From Haliotis rubra (Eukaryota): DNA of 64,000 nucleotides. The first letter of the stretch is position 1; every line of letters starts with the position of its first letter. The position numbers and the translations under genes are program-made. The notes under the pieces were generated by a model. The model had not been told where the DNA came from, did not search any database, and was given only the letters and a program-made list of their open reading frames with translations. Where the stretch lies: positions 1,674,001 to 1,738,000 of the forward strand of contig NW_025765647.1 of assembly GCF_003918875.1 (NCBI RefSeq). Direction: 5' to 3'. Of the stretch, positions 44,850-55,200 are shown in pieces.

Positions 44850-45110
44850 ACAAAGTTAATCGTTTTATGTCTAATGACCCATCTTGTTCTTGCGGTGCTT
44901 TCTGGTGTCCCCCGCCGTGATGTTGCTGGAATATTGCTAAATGCGGCGTAAAACCAAACTCAGTCAGTCAGTCAGTCTTGCGGTGCTATTTGTGAAGATA
45001 ATTTACATTATTTCTTTATATGTCCAAATTATGACAACTCAATAAATGATAAGCATTTTTATAGAAATGGAAACAACCTCAAATCAGTGCTATATGGAAA
45101 CATTGAAACA
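44850..45110 (+). mobile_element. LINE 3' zinc-knuckle fragment interrupted by a SINE A tail (44900-44975)
   Basis: DPSCSCGA|ICEDNLHYFFICPNY, with TSD tcttgcggtgct at 44888-44899 and 44976-44987. Confidence 0.72.
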
Positions 45111-45221
45111 TCAGAAATTGAAATTTGCACATTGTTAAATTTGTTCATTGTTTTATTGAAAAATTTGGTTGAATTAAGATTTAAGAAGTAATGTACTGAA
45201 ATGCAATGTAATCTACAGCTA

Positions 45222-46085
45222 AACTGACCGGCAAAAGAAAGTATACCAAAAGTTACCATTTCTTAAATATTTAAGAAATATTTTGGTAGGTAAATTATAC
45301 ACTGAAACATGTCGCCTCAGCGTAGCAATTTGATACCTGCAGTGAAATTCACGTGCACGTCGTGAATAAAACGTCGAAGTGTTCAATTGGATAAACCATG
45401 AGTTTGGGCCTCTGTCAGAGTTCCACATGCGCTACGGGTATAAAAGTTAGTTTGCGGACAAGTTACACATGCAGTTTAAAAAAGATCACCTTAGATATGC
45501 CACGACTATCATCAGTAGAACGTGAGAGGACTATAGGCATGCTCCAGATAGGGTCTACACACGCCAACGTTGCAAGAACCTTCGGCTGCACCCGTGTTGC
45601 CGTCACTAAACTGCTGCAACGTTACAGGCAGACGGGCCAGACACAGGACAGACCAAGAAGTGGGAGACCGCGAGTACCAACACCAGCTGAAGACCGGCAT
45701 TTGAGGACGTTACACCTGAGAAACCGTTTCCTGACGGTCACGTCATCAGCAGCGAATTCCCTTGATCACCTTGTCAGTCGATACACGGTGGCTAGACGTC
45801 TTCGAGCAGCAGGTATCAGAGCCTACAGACCCTTCAAAGGACAGGTGTTGACCCCTAAACACAGACGTCACAGACTGCGTTGGCCCGAGTTGTTCGTCGT
45901 TGGCAGCGACGAGAGGAACAACGTGAACGTTCTACAGTGACCAGCACCTTCTCCAGACATGTCCCCGATCGAGCACATTTTGGATGCACTAGACAGAAGC
46001 ATGCGGAAACTCCCTAACCAACCATAGAATAGAGAGCAACTTGCACAAGCCCCCCAAGGACGAATGGCGTCGCATACCACGTGAC
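45222..46085 (+). mobile_element. Tc1 element, left part (ATG 45497, DDE core deleted)
   Basis: MPRLSSVERERTIGMLQIG...RSGRPR...GIRAYRP and SPDMSPIEHI. Confidence 0.88.
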
Positions 46086-46221
46086 GTCCCTTTCTGGTGG
46101 CAATATGTTTTCCATCGAGGGAAGTTTGTTTCTATAAAATATGGATTAAGAGAGCTTCCCAAGGATTTATCGTTGGAAGGTGAAGTGATATATGGTATAG
46201 TTTACACATTTGGAGGACAAA

Positions 46222-47394
46222 ATGGTTTCGATTGATGTTTATCGAGCCAGAATCGGCAGTTTCACTCATCCGAAGGGAACACGACAAGTGACGTTGCACA
46301 AACAAGAGAGTGAGTACTCACCATTCGTGTCAGGGACAGATGTCCACTTCAGGCTGATAATTTGTACACTTCTCATCGCTGTGCATCTTACCTCATCATA
46401 TCTCTTGATAGATACACTTGAAAATGTCAATTTTGAACGATTTGTGCCGAAAGAAAACATATACCTTTGTACATCATATGACGTCACTACTGTCAACTGT
46501 GACCCAGTTTTGGCTATGTATCATGCTTCATTTGCACGTGGGGTGTGCTTTCTTGGTGGTAACGTGCCGCCCGTGGGTGTTGTGAAACATATTCTGATGT
46601 GTGCAAATGACATTGAAACCAACCCCGGCCCTCTTACTTTGAAAGAAGTGAGAGATTGCTTAATAGCTGAAATACGAGACGTCAAATCAGATTTATCATC
46701 ACAGATCACCGCCTTGAAAACTAAGATGATATCAATCGGATCCAGATATGATCAAGAGAAGTCAGTGTCAGATATCAAATCAGATATCGCCGCCTCCAAA
46801 CATGAGTATGGCATCATGTATTCTGATCTTGACGCCATAGATGAAAGGGTAAATGGATTTGATGAACGTTTGACCATGATAGACGCTGAGCTAGATAAGC
46901 TGGGATCGTTTAGCCGTCGAGACAACGTCATCATACATGATGTACCGGAAGCCGAAGGGGAGAAATCAATGGCATGCAAGGAAACTATTCTCAACCTATT
47001 CACAAAGTACCTAACGTTCAAAACGTGGCAACCAATTGACGTTATTAGAGCCCATCGCCTTGGGCGTAAGCGTGCCGATTCAACTAAGCCACGCCCGATA
47101 ATTGTCAAGGTGCAAATGTCAGATGACAAAGTTAGAGCGCTGAAAGCAAGGTCTGTGCTGAAGGAAAATGGATATGGTATCTCCAGTGATCTGACCACAC
47201 GCCAACGTCAACAACTTCACGATCTGAAAGAAACTGGTCAGTTTGGTTACTTCAAGAACGGTGAACTTGTAGTGGTACCGAGTGAACGTGCGCACACTCA
47301 GTCTCGTCCCCATATGAGGATTACGCAAAGTAGACGTCAGCCACGTACTGATCGTGACGACCGTCAACCACTTGAAAGCACTGTATCTGAATAG
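46222..47394 (+). CDS. LINE ORF1: hydrophobic leader, 2A-like motif, coiled coil and L1-type RRM/CTD
   Basis: Intact 390-aa ORF with DIETNPGP, RRDNVIIHDVPE, IRAHRLG, KPRPIIVK and GISSDLT. Confidence 0.85.
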   Translation: MVSIDVYRARIGSFTHPKGTRQVTLHKQESEYSPFVSGTDVHFRLIICTLLIAVHLTSSYLLIDTLENVNFERFVPKENIYLCTSYDVTTVNCDPVLAMYHASFARGVCFLGGNVPPVGVVKHILMCANDIETNPGPLTLKEVRDCLIAEIRDVKSDLSSQITALKTKMISIGSRYDQEKSVSDIKSDIAASKHEYGIMYSDLDAIDERVNGFDERLTMIDAELDKLGSFSRRDNVIIHDVPEAEGEKSMACKETILNLFTKYLTFKTWQPIDVIRAHRLGRKRADSTKPRPIIVKVQMSDDKVRALKARSVLKENGYGISSDLTTRQRQQLHDLKETGQFGYFKNGELVVVPSERAHTQSRPHMRITQSRRQPRTDRDDRQPLESTVSE

Positions 47395-47499
47395 GACGGT
47401 GGTCAAGGCCCGGACTTTATATCACAGGGTCCTCAAATTAGCACTGACACCGGTGATAATCGTCATTCGCTTACTCGGATTAAGAAACTGACAGTGACA

Positions 47500-50400
47500 A
47501 ACCGCCTTTTTGTGCTTGAACATAAATGGGTTGATTGAAAAGATTGATGATATCAGTTTTATCGATTATCTTCGTAAATTTCACATCATATGTTTGATTG
47601 AGACTTTTCTAACCGACATCTCTTACAATTGGTTGGATGGCTATGACGTGTTCTATAGCCCTGCTCAAATTGTCAGATCAAACTGTCAGATGCTATACCT
47701 TCAACTTATTAACATCTGATATTAATAATTTCATTTTGTATAGCGAACAGTAGAGTGTATGGAGACTCCTAAAGGTGAATATACGTTTCATGGGCAATAG
47801 GGATCAACTTTGTCAATGTCACATTTTATTGGGGTTCCCGTACAGACTTCTTCCAATTTATTATACTTGTTGAATATTGGAGACAGAGTAGACTCTGATC
47901 ATTTACCATTAGAACTGAATTGTCAATTTCCAAATATGAACAACACAAGTGATAAATACCATATTGATGATTATAAAGAATAGATTGTTTGATCATTTAC
48001 GACGCCTGTTGCGAAATATTTTTAGATAATTTAAAAAAAGTAAGACTTCATTTTATAATGATCGTCTCTTATCTAAACTTGAGTTCGATCTAAACGGAGC
48101 TTTAGATGAGTTTGTCCATGTCAGATTAGATTCAGCAGATTGTATGAAGAAAAAAGACTAAGCTGTTTAAGCAAAACTATAAAACACCCTTAAGTGACGA
48201 GTGTAAAACTGCGCGACGAGACGCGCGCAAAGCACTTAGAAGTTTTCGGTGTAGACGCTCGGAGAGCAACAGAAATTATTTTTGTAAAATGAGAAACAAA
48301 TACAAAGCTTCATGTAGAAAATTCAAATCTAACCTGCGTAATCAAAGATTGAACAGATTGAATGATTCTATCCACAATCCTGCTGTGTTCTGGAAACAAA
48401 TTCGTTTATTTAGAAAGAGATCAAATCCTAAAAGTAATATTCAAAATGTGAATGGATGACACATTTCAAGACAGTTTTTTCTAATGATGCTGTTTTTCCA
48501 GGCGATGGTTATTCCTTCGATGATGATATTATCTCTTCGAATGACTGACACTGTTGATCAAATGATTTTGGAAACACAAATTTCAGTAGATGAGATAAAG
48601 AATGCTATAAATAACTTAAAGAGCGGAAAAGCAGCTGGTCCCGACAATATATAATCGAAATGATTAAATGTTCTCAATTCGAGTTAATGCCCCCTCCCCA
48701 TAAATGTTTTAATACTGTATTTGAAAGTGGTTCGTCTCCAGAAAGCTGGTCTCGTTCAATTATCGTCCCTTTACATAAAAAGGGGCTCAAGACAATCAAG
48801 ATAATTACAGAGGCATATCTTTAATGAGTGCTTTTGGGAAAATATTTACAACTGTTTTTAAACAACAGAATCTCAATTTGGTCAAATCTAAGAAACTTAA
48901 TTCCTGAATGTCAGGCGGCTTTTAGAACAGATTATTCAACTACTGACCATATCTTTACACTATATGCAATAATACAAAAGTGTTTATCGCGTAATAAACA
49001 CAAACTTTATGTAGCATTTGTTGACTTTTAAGAAAGCTTTTGACTCTGTGGATCGTTGTAAATTATGGCACTGCTTACGAAAGTCTGGTTTACAAGGAAA
49101 AATGTATTCTATTTTAAAATCTATGTACTTGAATATTAAATCATGTGTTCGTTGTGGTGATGATGTCACCGATTTTTTTCGAATGTCCCATGGGAGTTCG
49201 GCAAGGGTGTATTTTAAGCCCTGTATTGTTTTCCTTCTTTATAAGCGAACTGTATGATGACATTTCTAATTCAGGTAAACACGGTGTGCAAATGTTTCCA
49301 GATATGATTGAAATTTTTATCCTCCTTTTGCCGATGATGTAATCTTAGTGTCAGATACTATCGTCGGTCTACAAAACCAACTGAATATTTTGGAACGTTA
49401 TAAAATGAATGGAAATTATTTGTTAATTTTGAAAAAAGAAACAGAGTTATCTTTAGAAGAGGTGGGCCTGTCGCCTCTGAGTGGCAAAAATGTATCTATT
49501 GTTAATCAGTATACCTATCTCGGACTATTGTTTTCCCATACCATGAACTTTAAAAAGAGTGTTATAGACCTGAAATCACGTGCTAAGAAGGCTCTTATTA
49601 ATGTTATGTCAGTTTCCCAGAATTTTGGAATCTTAACCCCGAAAATATATTTTAAATTGTTTGATGCACAAATCCAACCGATTATGCTTTATGGGTCTGA
49701 AATTTTGGGATTTCAACGTCATGAAAGTCTAGAGAAACTACACCTTTTAGCATGTAAAAGATTTTTTAATGTAGCGCAAGCAGCACCAACTTGTATGGTT
49801 TATGGAGAATGCGGTTGATATCCGATATATATAAATTCACAAATCAGATGTTTAAAATATTGGTTAAAGATCCTTGGAATGCACGAACAAAGAATCCCCA
49901 TACTAGCTTTATAACATGCTTGTAAATTTAGATGATAGGGGTAAGACAACATGGGGCGTCTCATATTAGAACTCTTTTATTTTCTCATGGCTTTGGATTT
50001 GTGTGGCTAAATCAAACAGTTGGTAATATTAATCAATTTCTTAAGCAATTTCGAGAACAATCTGTTAGCATGTATTATCAAGAATGGCATTCCTGTCTAG
50101 ACAATAGTTCAAGATACCAGTTGTATAGATCACATAAGAGCTTAATTCAACCAGATAGATAGACGATAGTATCAGAACTATATCTATCTGTATTGACATC
50201 TAGAAATAAATATCAGACGCACGCTTGTCAATTTTCGATTGGGCTTGTTAGACTTATCAGTAAATAAGGACAGACAGTTTTTTCAATAGAGAGACGTTTA
50301 AGGATATGTCATTATGTAACTCGGCTATAGAAGATGAAATTCACTTCGCTTTTTGTATGCCCACATTATGCTGATTTAAGAAAAAAATATATCCCAAATA

Positions 50401-50534
50401 ATTACCTGTTAAAATACCCTTCATCTGCCTTTGCTTCCATTCTATCCTCCAAAAATGAAAATGTAATGCGTAATCTTGTGCTTTATGTAAAACATGCTGT
50501 TTTCCTTAGAAGCAATATCTTAACTGAACTGTAA
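47500..50534 (+). pseudogene. LINE ORF2 (APE + RT + Cys tail), frameshifted in this assembly
   Basis: CLNINGL...ICLIETFL, DSDHLP, KSGKAAGPD, NYRGISL, FVDF.KAFDSVDR, GVRQGCILSPVLF, L(F)ADD, YTYLG, YGSEI and FVCPHY. Confidence 0.9.
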
Positions 50535-50638
50535 TTTCTTTGTGAAATGTCTGTAACATATGCTGTATATATACTTGTATTACTTGTATATGGGCCGGAG
50601 GCCTTAAAGTACAATAAATATCTTTGACTTGACTTGAC

Positions 50639-50920
50639 CTTGTCCGACGTCTGACGTCTTTGGCTAGAAGGAGAGTGCGTGCCTGTATTGATGCAAGGGG
50701 TGGACATACAGGATACTAAAGTGATGGCAGTGAACATATATTGTGTGTAACTTAGTAGTTTCATTCTTTTATTATAGGACATTTAAATAGTGCATATATC
50801 CACGCAACTAAGTACATACGCAAGGCGCTAGAGCGTTCCCCTTCATCAACGGATGTCTATTTTCTGGCATTCTTTAACCAACTCAACTCCTGGGAGTATT
50901 TAACTGTTAGGCGCAGCGAG
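50639..50920 (+). mobile_element. Tc1 element, right part
   Basis: LVRRLTSLARRRVRACIDARGGHTGY* continues the frame broken at 46085. Confidence 0.82.
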
Positions 50921-50924
50921 TTAT

Positions 50925-51275
50925 CACACAGCCTCATCCTCACAAGGTACCCATTTGCAGCTGGGTGTACTGGGACACACAGTCATAGTGTTTTGTCCAA
51001 TAATACTGCACGTTACTGTAACCGCAGCTAGGTATCTGCACGTGTCGTACCCGTGTATTCCACCATCTGGTCACCTATCATCGGATGAGTGGGTTCTTTT
51101 AAATGCACAGGGTTATGTACTGCACACTAGGGGTTGTGGCAACAGTGAAAGAGCCTGCAAGTAATGTGCTCCAGCTCCAAGGTTTTACACCCGGTCACAA
51201 GTGGAGATCGATCCATGCACCTTTCGCTACAAGCGCGACGCCTTAGACACCCGCTCTCGCTCACCTTGCCACCAT
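50925..51275 (-). mobile_element. tRNA-derived SINE family D
   Basis: tRNA-like head on the minus strand at ~51200-51265, and a cacccagctgcaaatgggtacc core motif. Confidence 0.6.
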
Positions 51276-51296
51276 CTTGTAACAATCCTTTTTCTA

Positions 51297-52293
51297 AAAT
51301 CACGTGCTAAGAAGGCTCTTATTAATGTTATGTCAGTTTCCCAGAATTTGGAATCTTAGCTTGAAAATATATTTTAAATTGTTTGATGCACAAATCCAAC
51401 CGATTATGCTTTATGGGTCTGAAATTTTTGGGATTTCAACGTCGCTTGAAAGTCTAGCGAAACTACACCTTTTAGCATGTAAAAGATTTTTAATGTGTAA
51501 GCGCAAGCACCAACTTGTATGGTTTATGGAGAATGCGGTTGATATCCGATATATATAAATTCACAAATCAGATGTTTAAAATATTGGTTAAAGATCCTTG
51601 GAATGCACGAACAAAGAATCCCCATACTAGCTTATAACATGCTTGTAAATTTAGATGATAGGGGTAGAAAGACAACATGGGGCGTCTCATATTAGAACTC
51701 TTTTATTTTCTCATGGCTTTGGATTTGTGTGGCTAAATCAAAACGGTTGGTAATATTAATCAATTTCTTAAGCAATTTCGAGAACAATCTGTTAGCATGT
51801 ATTATCAAGAATGGCATTCCTGTCTAGACAATAGTTCAAGATACCAGTTGTATAGATCACATAAGAGCTTAATTCAACCAGATAGATAGACGATAGTATC
51901 AGAACTATATCTATCTGTATTGACATCTAGAAATATTACTTGTATATGGGCCGGAGGCCTTAAGTACAATAAATATCTTTGACTTGACTTGACCTTGTCC
52001 GACGTCTGACGTCTTTGGCTAGAAGGAGAGTGCGTGCCTGTATTGATGCAAGGGGTGGACATACAGGATACTAAAAGTGATGGCAGTGAACATATATTGT
52101 ATTGTAACTTAGTAGTTTCATTCTTTTTATTATAGGACATTTAAATAGTGCATATATCCACGCAGCTAGTCCATGTACATAAGCAAGGCGCTAGAGCGTT
52201 CCCCTTCATCAACGGATGTCTATTTTCTGGCATTCTTTTAACCAACTCAACTCCCTGGGAGTATTTAACTGTTAGGCGCAGCGAGTTATCACA
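51297..52293 (+). repeat. Direct duplicate of 49573-50927 lacking ~50210-50577
   Basis: Near-identical sequence with small indels. Confidence 0.9.
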
Positions 52294-52294
52294 C

Positions 52295-55200
52295 TTTCGG
52301 GGTTGGAACCAAATTCGGAAGGCTGACATAACATTAATAGGCAACTTCTTAGCACGTAATTTTAGAAAAGTTGACCAGATATTGACGACTTGGCAATGAC
52401 GTCGCGCTTTAACGAAAGCGCATGTCGATACTCCGCGACCGAATATTGGGCGCGTGCCGAATTTCTTCTGACGCCACAACGGTACGCCAACTTGTGCGTT
52501 AAGAACCACTCATCAGGCGAACCGAATGATAGTTACTGCTGGTACCGATAACGAATCTTCAACTGCGGTGCAGCCAACGTCTGACAGCGCAACAATGATA
52601 CGGCTTTAATGTTACCCTTCGGCGAAGATGAAGACTTTATTATTGACTTCGCTTTATCAACTGAACAAATACTCCCCGAAGTGGACGGATGAAAAAAATA
52701 ACCGAAAGAACGTCATGAAGAACGCTCTGGCGAATACTCACCAGCAAGCTCATAATCAAAGGAATGAAACTACTAATTTTGCGACCTGTTCGCTGCCGTC
52801 GCTGGCGTAATCACGCCTCTCAGCGATCGAAGTCAAAGATAAAGCGCCTCCGGCTATATACAAGTAATGCGGCTATGGCATATCATACGGTGGCTAAAGA
52901 GCACGGTTAGGTGAATCGCCTTCACAGAAGGAAAACGGCATGTTTAACTGAACCCGTATTGACACAATTTTGGAGAATAGAATAGCTGCTTTGAATGGTG
53001 TATTTTGAGTTTCTTAAATCGGCATAATGAGCATACAAAGCGAAGTGTCTTCTGGCCATCGTAAACGTCTCTCTGCTGTCTGTTCCCGCGGCAAGTCTAA
53101 CCAAGCAGTGAAGCGTGCATCTGTCAACGAATGAATGTAATTTCTGATAACATCACCATCTATCTGGTTGGTGTATGTGATCTGCTTTAACTGACATCTT
53201 GAACTTGTTATTAAGACGAATGCCATTAACAACAATACGTAACTGTATGAGCAAACGATTATCAATACCAGCTTTGTTTGATTTAGCCACACCAATCAAG
53301 CCGGCGAAAAATAAAGTTCATGAACGCCCTTCCTTCTTACCTAAGCTAACCGTAATTTGAACTGTTGCATTCAAGTCTTTAACAATGTTGCAAATGTCAC
53401 GATTTAATGAGCTATATATCGGATGTCAACCCGTCCATAAACCGCTTTGGTGATTGCTTGCGCTTACATTAAAATCTTTTGCGAGTGGCAGTTTCGCTGA
53501 ACTTCATGACGTTGAAAGGTATCCCAGGCTCGAACCCATAGCGGTTGTGCATCAAGCAATTTAAATACTTTCGAGATTCAAATTCTGAGGCTTTATTTGC
53601 TGGCATTAATGAAGCCTTCTTAGCGCGACCGGAGTCTGTAACTTCTTTTTAAAGTTCATGATGAAAACAACAGTCTTTTGTTAACAATGGTATTTTTGCG
53701 CTCGAAGCGACAATTCTAAAGACACCAACTTCTGTTTGTGCAGGTAACAGATATTTCCGTTCGTTACATAACGTTCCCAAAACTATTCGGTGATTTTATG
53801 AACGTGGTATCTGACATGCGTCATCGTAGAGGATACGGAAATTTCGGTCGCCTTCTCGAGCACGTTGCACACCGTGTTACCTGAATTGAAAGCCTGTCGT
53901 CATGCGGTTTAAACGCGAGCAATACCGGGGCTTAAAATCGCCTTTGCCGAACAAGAGACATTCGAGAAATCGACTGACATCTGTACGCTCGATTTATTCG
54001 AGAGTCGCATGGGTACAAAGGTAAGGGCTGCATTTTCGCTTGTGGCTTCGACGGTAACGCCAATTACGGCGATCCACCGGAGTCAAAGCTTTCTTAAAGT
54101 CGGCAAATGTACATAAAATTTGTGTTTGACCGCGATAAACGCATTGCATATAGTCTTCGAAGACATGATCGTGGACGAATAATACTGCAAAAAGCTTGCA
54201 TGTTCATTCAAAGGAATAGCTGTGGGTGACGGTGAATTCGCGACCACGTTTTAAAACGGTTGTATTTTCCCGAAAGCGCTCGTCGCTCAGCAATGTCTTG
54301 GTGTCTTCGAGCCCCATATGAGGACCAACTCGGAAACCCGCTTTCAAATGCGGTATTAAAGGCTGTTTATGAAGGCGACCAACTTTCAATTGAAGACATT
54401 TGTCATTTCGACTGTTGATAAAGGGACCGGCACCGCTCTTCGAGACCCATTTATGCTCTCGTCTACTTAATTTGTTTCAAATGTTTGATCGGCTGTCATT
54501 CGAAGAGATCGTCGTCGAAGGAACAAATAAAGCATAACGTCGTCAAACTTTGTCGAGATATTGATATCGATGCATTTTGATTGCTGGAGATTTGATGTCT
54601 TTCTGTTGTGGTTTCAAGTCATTCAGTCGTTAAATCTTTGGGTGAACGGATAGATTTTCTGCAATGAGCTTTATTTGTTCTTTCGTTTTACACAAAGGCA
54701 ATTCTGTTGTCTACGCCGAAAACTTTCAAATTAACTTTGCGCATCTCATAGCGCGGTTTTCTCAGGTAGCAAGGGTGTTTTATAGTTTCAGCAAACAGCC
54801 AGTCTTTTCTTTCTGCAATGGACAAACTCATCTGAAGCTTTCCGTTTTGAATCGAACTCAGTTTAGATGAAGCGATCGTTATGAAGTCTTACTTTTCAGG
54901 CCAAATCTCAAAATGTTCGCGGCGGTGATCGTTGATCTATTCTTTATGATAAACGATTTGCTCGCTGTCGTTGATTTCATCGATACGAAATTGACGAGTC
55001 GATGTTAGTGATCAAGGTCTGTCTCCAGTATTCAACGAGTTGAACGGAAGAGTATCTGATGAACTCAACTCAAAAGCATGACGCTTATGGTATGTTGCTT
55101 TAACGTCTTTCAATATACTGCCGTTCATTGCTGGTTGAAGGTAACGACGGTTGTTTAACGAGACTTATGACTTACCGCTTATGATGAAATTTACGGTAAT

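Follow-up and report, generated by a model that had tools for sequence, protein, structure and literature searches.

The putative 2A/StopGo motif in ORF1

The first ORF of an abalone LINE contains a canonical octapeptide, D-[VI]-E-x-N-P-G-P, in frame inside the longer reading frame. The LINE belongs to an APE-type family, in which this motif probably functions as StopGo/2A. ORF1 (46222-47394, on the plus strand like all features described below) encodes 390 amino acid residues, from the ATG at 46222 to the TAG at 47392-47394. The 2A/StopGo peptide covers residues 117-137 (46570-46632), with the core DIETNPG|P at residues 130-137 (46609-46632). The predicted break lies between Gly136 (46627-46629) and Pro137 (46630-46632), and a split at this bond would give a 136-residue leader ending in NPG and a 254-residue protein starting with Pro137. 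An earlier note on this DNA had read DIETNPGP at this place in ORF1, between a leader and an ORF1p of these lengths, and the ORF translation agreed with it on both points.

In a six-frame translation of the window (the whole 64-kb stretch of DNA analysed), D[VI]ExNPGP and NPGP each occurred once, at the ORF1 site only. With roughly equal residue frequencies, an estimated ∼1e-4 full-motif matches would arise by chance per 128,000 codons. Residues -19 to -9 upstream of the core read V-G-V-V-K-H-I-L-M-C-A, with a single Leu in positions -13 to -10. A short helix upstream of the core, at residues 118-127, was modelled by AlphaFold2 with low confidence (pLDDT about 47-52).

The host LINE and the state of the window copy

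The LINE copy (APE+RT) extends over 46081-50638, its ends being set by independent copies, and is arranged as 5′ UTR, ORF1, ORF2 and 3′ UTR. The 5′ UTR has 141 nt (46081-46221); alignments with the copies L033, L034 and L042 start at 46081-46084 and have unrelated flanks. Three tiny uORFs of 10, 2 and 2 codons precede the ORF1 AUG, whose context is strong, with A at -3 and G at +4. The stretch 46105-46200 holds these uORFs together with a TATAAAA box. No ribozyme was found at the 5′ end of the LINE family when 45000-52500 was searched with Rfam.

The ORF2 remnant (47395-50534; APE endonuclease and reverse transcriptase) was traced from the ORF list and by comparison with L033, L034 and L042. 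Pfam detected Exo_endo_phos and RVT_1 in ORF2 of the better-preserved copies L040 and L037. The nearest solved reverse transcriptase was human L1 ORF2p (E 8e-28), among PDB reverse transcriptases that comprise L1 and R2 only. These domains bear out the placing of the motif in a LINE by the earlier note, and the sequence assigns the host element to the APE-type LINEs. NPGP was absent from all 29 ORF2 homologues recovered by a word search with ORF2.

The 3′ UTR (50535-50638) contains a GGCC-type hairpin, GGGCCGGAGGCC, at 50592-50603, AATAAA at 50613-50618 and (TTGAC)3 at 50624-50638. Independent family copies end at 50634-50645, and the undeleted unit is ∼4.9 kb. The same 3′ order, a GGCC-N-GGCC hairpin, AATAAA and a tandem tail of 4-5 bases, was seen in L043 and L044, two distant relatives on JGI contigs, whose tails are of the 4-base TTCG type and (TTGAA)n, respectively. 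The hairpin followed by a 4-5-base tandem tail presumably resembles L2-type ends, and we take this as a lead only. Directly downstream of the first copy comes another, partial 3′ fragment of this LINE family (51294-51993), which matches, at 90-92%, the 3′ part of ORF2 and the 3′ end of L032-L042.

ORF2 of the window copy is broken by many frameshifts, and ∼400 bp of the endonuclease region are gone around 47680-47741. This deletion and the upstream flank (from about 45050) are common to the window and two other loci (L031 and L032), so we regard the window copy, from its sequence, as a dead, duplicated element. Relative to its siblings, its ORF1 has the changes C176Y, E228G and G240D and lacks one of their Leu codons in the coiled coil. 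The description of ORF1 as intact in the earlier note thus held for the open frame, while this copy departs from its siblings at conserved sites and its ORF2 is broken. Since the window copy is dead, any function belongs to the family and not to this locus. The flank co-duplicated at L031 and L032 contains, shortly before the start of the LINE, a 180-aa ORF (45398-45940) with a helix-turn-helix pattern like that at the N-terminus of a Tc1/mariner transposase.

Conservation of the motif and selection on the peptide

Further copies were located by BLAST in the rest of the 1.38-Gb genome, and copy statistics were taken from 42 loci. For the question of motif conservation, natural copies were aligned and no family consensus was made. 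The abalone copies form at least four subfamilies, with ORF1 identities to the window copy of 55-70%. Seventeen copies spanning all four subfamilies kept D[VI]ExNPGP, and differences among them were confined to the unconstrained x, which was T, S, L, A or P, or to V/I. In the copies with a broken motif, translation there passes stops, frameshifts or gaps.

Across copies, the motif codons vary synonymously: GAC/GAT for D, GAA/GAG for E, CCC/CCA/CCG for the first P, GGC/GGA/GGG for G, CCT/CCC for the last P and AAT/AAC for the Asn at -8, and the I/V codons vary too. The 20-codon 2A stretch had a dN/dS of 0.10-0.25 between subfamilies (NG86). Since the codons change synonymously, selection acts on the peptide.

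A word search recovered 77 ORF1 homologues, 47 of them with NPGP ahead of the coiled coil. The nearest named homologue came from Haliotis cracherodii. Among the 47 with NPGP were proteins of Littorina saxatilis and of ticks of the genera Dermacentor, Rhipicephalus, Amblyomma, Ixodes, Haemaphysalis and Ornithodoros. In a 30-sequence alignment (A1), L125 (position -12), D130, E132, N134, P135, G136 and P137 were at least 90% conserved. The 2A directly precedes the coiled coil in all aligned homologues; here the helix runs from residue 140, after P137. The expectation in the earlier note that the motif would be conserved among family copies was thus confirmed by the four subfamilies, the synonymous codon variation and the low dN/dS. 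Judged from these sequences, the motif is no chance match, and the layout is real and under selection.

The leader

The leader (residues 1-136, 46222-46629) ends in NPG and contains the N-terminal motif MVSIDVYRARIGSF (46222-46263), a YSPFVSGTDVHFR block and, before the 2A peptide, a variable Cys-containing stretch. In its general form, M-(G)-V-x-[IL]-x-x-[YW]-R-x-[RK]-I-G-x-F, the N-terminal motif is common to abalone, database proteins and Ixodes pacificus. The block reads Y-[ST]-P..S-G-x-D-[IV]-H-F-R in the family. M1, R8 and I11 were invariant in the leader alignment (A3), Ixodes proteins included. Between subfamilies, dN/dS of the leader was 0.22-0.37, and that of its first 45 codons 0.06-0.22.

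Residues 45-63 (46354-46410) form a hydrophobic helix and likely membrane anchor, with a 19-residue Kyte-Doolittle mean of 2.20; AlphaFold2 modelled a helix at 39-68 with pLDDT 81-88. The leader is therefore probably membrane-anchored via this helix.

A leader profile matched 674 cluster representatives among 1.84 billion at E <=1e-3. Nearly all matches begin at residue 1, in proteins of ORF1 size or shorter. Among 148 new top matches (P0107-P0254), the N-terminal motif was present in 116, a canonical 2A in 136 and both in 105, and 106 had a comparable hydrophobic segment. Four profile matches, P0108, P0120, P0217 and P0135, have 2 to 5 canonical 2A motifs per protein, that is, tandem StopGo sites in non-viral or unassigned sequences. 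The leader had no match in Pfam and no usable match in the ESM Atlas, and a full-text literature search with its N-terminal motif returned nothing relevant. The conservation points to the leader as a separate conserved product and not a spacer.

ORF1p downstream of the predicted break

ORF1p proper, 254 residues from Pro137 (46630-47391), was characterised with AlphaFold2 and Foldseek. The model, made from the 30-sequence alignment, consists of one long coiled-coil helix (residues 140-232, 46639-46917), an RRM (residues 235-315, 46924-47166), a C-terminal domain (residues 319-352, 47176-47277) and a basic disordered tail. Most of the model had pLDDT >90, as did the RRM and the C-terminal domain. 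The best Foldseek matches were the human LINE-1 ORF1p trimers 2YKQ, 2YKP and 2YKO (E 2e-8 to 1e-6; TM 0.54-0.58 by target), and the L1 ORF1p RRM 2W7A was matched at TM 0.71. The model and these matches agree with the coiled-coil/RRM ORF1p of the earlier note. Pfam gave noise only on ORF1, with no Transposase_22 at E below 1, so the assignment as ORF1p is by fold and not by sequence profile. The dN/dS of ORF1p was 0.12-0.34, and SRRDN and RAHR were invariant in A1. By dN/dS, purifying selection acts at the protein level on both the leader and ORF1p.

The ORF1-ORF2 junction

ORF1 ends in UAG (47392-47394), and a conserved block follows (47392-47415 with the stop codon; GGCCAAGGCCCGG in sibling copies). 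UAG and the GGCCAAGGCCCGG block were found in all four abalone subfamilies (alignment A2). In the better-preserved copies L042, L040, L035 and L038, ORF2 is in the frame of ORF1 and has no AUG before the endonuclease domain. The distant relatives L043 (27% ORF1 identity, with a 1134-aa ORF2 call) and L044 (43%) read UAG CAA UCC GGC CA.. at this place, again with ORF2 in frame and without an AUG before the endonuclease domain. The equivalents of the junction lie at L040:2194-2240, L043:1282-1330 and L044:1304-1370.

The block after UAG is a conserved GGCC..GGCC, and the GGCC motif recurs in the 3′ UTR hairpin. RNAalifold on the four subfamilies gave no convincing RNA structure after UAG; the helix that it proposed was weak, with 5 pairs and hardly any covariation. 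The UAG junction is a candidate, on its sequence, for programmed read-through or non-AUG reinitiation. Elsewhere in the same genome (G000:C2091:890699-891811), an ORF1 homologue lies within an uninterrupted 1209-aa open frame, which might reflect a natural fusion of ORF1 with ORF2 or the loss of the stop codon in that copy.

Discussion

In the cryo-EM structure of 2A from foot-and-mouth disease virus (FMDV) in complex with the ribosome, D12, E14 and N16 bond 28S rRNA and the upstream hydrophobic helix packs in the exit tunnel (PMC12846837). The peptidyl-transferase centre is thereby distorted, so that the FMDV chain leaves at Gly and synthesis restarts at Pro (PMC12846837). The D, E and N conserved in the abalone family are the residues that make these bonds to 28S rRNA in FMDV 2A (PMC12846837). 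On this model, a ribosome would initiate at the ORF1 AUG and make the ∼136-residue leader. Its last ∼20 residues, a short hydrophobic helix followed by N-D-I-E-T-N-P-G, would be lodged in the exit tunnel. The Gly136-Pro137 bond would then not be formed and the leader would be released, and the same ribosome would continue to make an ORF1p starting with proline. This L1-type ORF1p, with its coiled coil, RRM and C-terminal domain, would coat the RNA of the element, and the 2A site may in addition determine the yield of ORF1p per initiation. We infer that bond skipping in active family members yields an NPG-ending leader and a Pro-initiated ORF1p. Weighing against this reading are the Asn at -8, the single Leu in -13 to -10, the low model confidence of the upstream helix and the lowered protein abundance reported for ORF1p-linked 2A-like peptides (PMC13405545).

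The residue before the D of the core (-8) is Asn129 and not Gly. Of 52 known 2As, 41 carry Gly before the D, and most of the others carry His (Sharma et al., PMC3326317), as the earlier note had it in calling Gly the common residue here. Every substitution tried at -8 (position 11) inactivated FMDV 2A (PMC3326317), and on this ground one might suppose that no skipping takes place in this gastropod lineage, that ORF1 is made as a 390-residue membrane-tethered fusion, and that the motif persists because of a different structural role. We consider this very unlikely. The six defining residues are fixed, with synonymous codon turnover, in the four subfamilies, and the Asn itself is fixed in all four and conserved beyond Haliotis in Littorina (P0009) and in P0001 and P0002; it co-occurs with an upstream context of [IL]-[LM]-C-[AS]. 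A residue other than Gly is common at -8 in the leader family: among 136 representatives with a canonical motif, G was found in 83, S in 21, A in 15 and N in 9. In the cardioviruses EMCV and TMEV, 2A with His at -8 is active in its own upstream context (PMC3326317). Cardiovirus 2A thus shares with the abalone motif the DxExNPGP core and a non-Gly residue at -8, but it has His with co-adapted A/Y/L upstream, whereas the abalone motif has Asn with I-L-M-C-A upstream. Moreover, a hydrophobic anchor fused to an RNA-coating trimer would seem at odds with RNP formation. Because the Asn is fixed in the subfamilies and shared with Littorina, P0001 and P0002, its sequence distribution marks it as a selected lineage trait and not a defect. 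Because cardiovirus 2As carry His there, we treat it as a variant state that is no bar to membership of the 2A class.

The main rival to bond skipping as the purpose of the motif is a braking role, in which stalling or drop-off lowers the amounts of ORF1p and ORF2p and the two clean proteins are secondary. A preprint found lower protein abundance with 2A-like peptides in its tests, in 70% of those associated with ORF1p, instead of clean skipping, and in 59% of those associated with ORF2p (PMC13405545), 2A has been argued to down-regulate LINE ORF2 (Luke et al. 2013, PMC3894237), and Asn at -8 could weaken the restart. A brake alone, however, leaves unexplained why the ∼115 residues upstream are a conserved family under purifying selection; ORF1p is also needed in many copies per RNA, so that throttling is not obviously useful. 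On balance we hold that the motif is unlikely to be kept mainly as a brake, though this is less improbable than the fusion described above. A chance match, or a fragment of an endogenous RNA virus outside any LINE, is hardly credible, with only the viral look of the motif to recommend it. Both were rejected on the ∼1e-4 expectation, the sole NPGP in the window, the conservation of the motif across copies and phyla, and the continuation of the ORF into an L1-type ORF1p, followed by APE and RT and a LINE-type 3′ end.

A working StopGo element thus remains the preferred reading, and a wider one can be offered tentatively, as possible but somewhat doubtful. Under it, one frame would give three products by two recoding events: the StopGo leader, the Pro-initiated ORF1p and, at a low level, an ORF1p-ORF2p fusion made by UAG read-through, which may be likened to that of gammaretroviral Gag-Pol. 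The lineage would then take in molluscs, ticks and further assemblies, and the leader, with its N-terminal motif and single hydrophobic helix, would count as a third LINE protein that had gone unrecognised. If so, it might keep RNA under translation at a membrane and in this way favour action of the proteins on their own RNA.

Several known systems resemble the abalone element. L1Tc is reportedly one of the APE-type non-LTR retrotransposons with 2A-like sequences (Heras et al. 2006). Odon et al. (2013) described about 50 APE-type LINEs with 2A-like sequences, from vertebrates, amphioxus, molluscs, sea urchin and sea anemone (PMC3708506). All but one were in ORF2, 40-80 residues from the N-terminus and mostly in elements without ORF1. 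Several were active in vitro, and the sole one in ORF1, that of L2A-1_NVe, carried S in place of E and showed no activity (PMC3708506). The statement of the earlier note that 2A motifs occur in non-LTR elements of marine invertebrates is therefore correct, though nearly all of them are in ORF2 (PMC3708506). Like these elements, the abalone LINE has D(V/I)ExNPGP near the N-terminus of a LINE frame in a marine invertebrate and encodes APE and RT; unlike them, it has a canonical motif in ORF1 (residues 117-137) of a two-ORF element with a separate ORF2.

The closest parallel is a July 2026 bioRxiv preprint, which in its passages on this subject describes ORF1p-like proteins of one limpet and five ticks whose 2A-like peptides form nine clusters, with the 2A always ahead of the coiled coil (PMC13405545). 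As described there, these proteins share with the abalone ORF1 the 2A, coiled coil, RRM and C-terminal domain and a fold like that of human L1 ORF1p; they differ from it in host and in having Gly rather than Asn at -8. Tick homologues of the abalone ORF1 were also recovered directly by our word search. The conserved pre-2A leader and the ORF1-UAG-ORF2 junction are abalone features that the preprint's passages on the limpet and tick proteins do not describe (PMC13405545). On those passages, the architecture is already published for limpet and ticks, and the abalone family adds a host and no new principle (PMC13405545).

A different use of 2A is reported by Roulston et al. (2016), whose account, as far as it bears on this comparison, concerns N-terminal 2A-like signal sequences and dual protein targeting (PMC4981915). 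In both cases a hydrophobic N-terminal segment combined with 2A could free the downstream protein from a targeting sequence. In the sea-urchin immune proteins treated in that account, the 2A-like peptide is itself the signal sequence (PMC4981915), whereas the abalone hydrophobic helix lies ∼55 residues upstream of the 2A, in a larger conserved leader.

The abalone family provides a well-documented natural 2A in the first ORF of a two-ORF LINE, with four subfamilies and codon-level selection, and extends the limpet and tick observation to abalone. The selection-kept Asn at -8 is a useful natural variant for studying the tuning of StopGo by upstream context. Of all its parts, the conserved leader and the in-frame UAG most deserve experiments; they suggest that virus-like polyprotein tactics are wider in this LINE lineage than reported.
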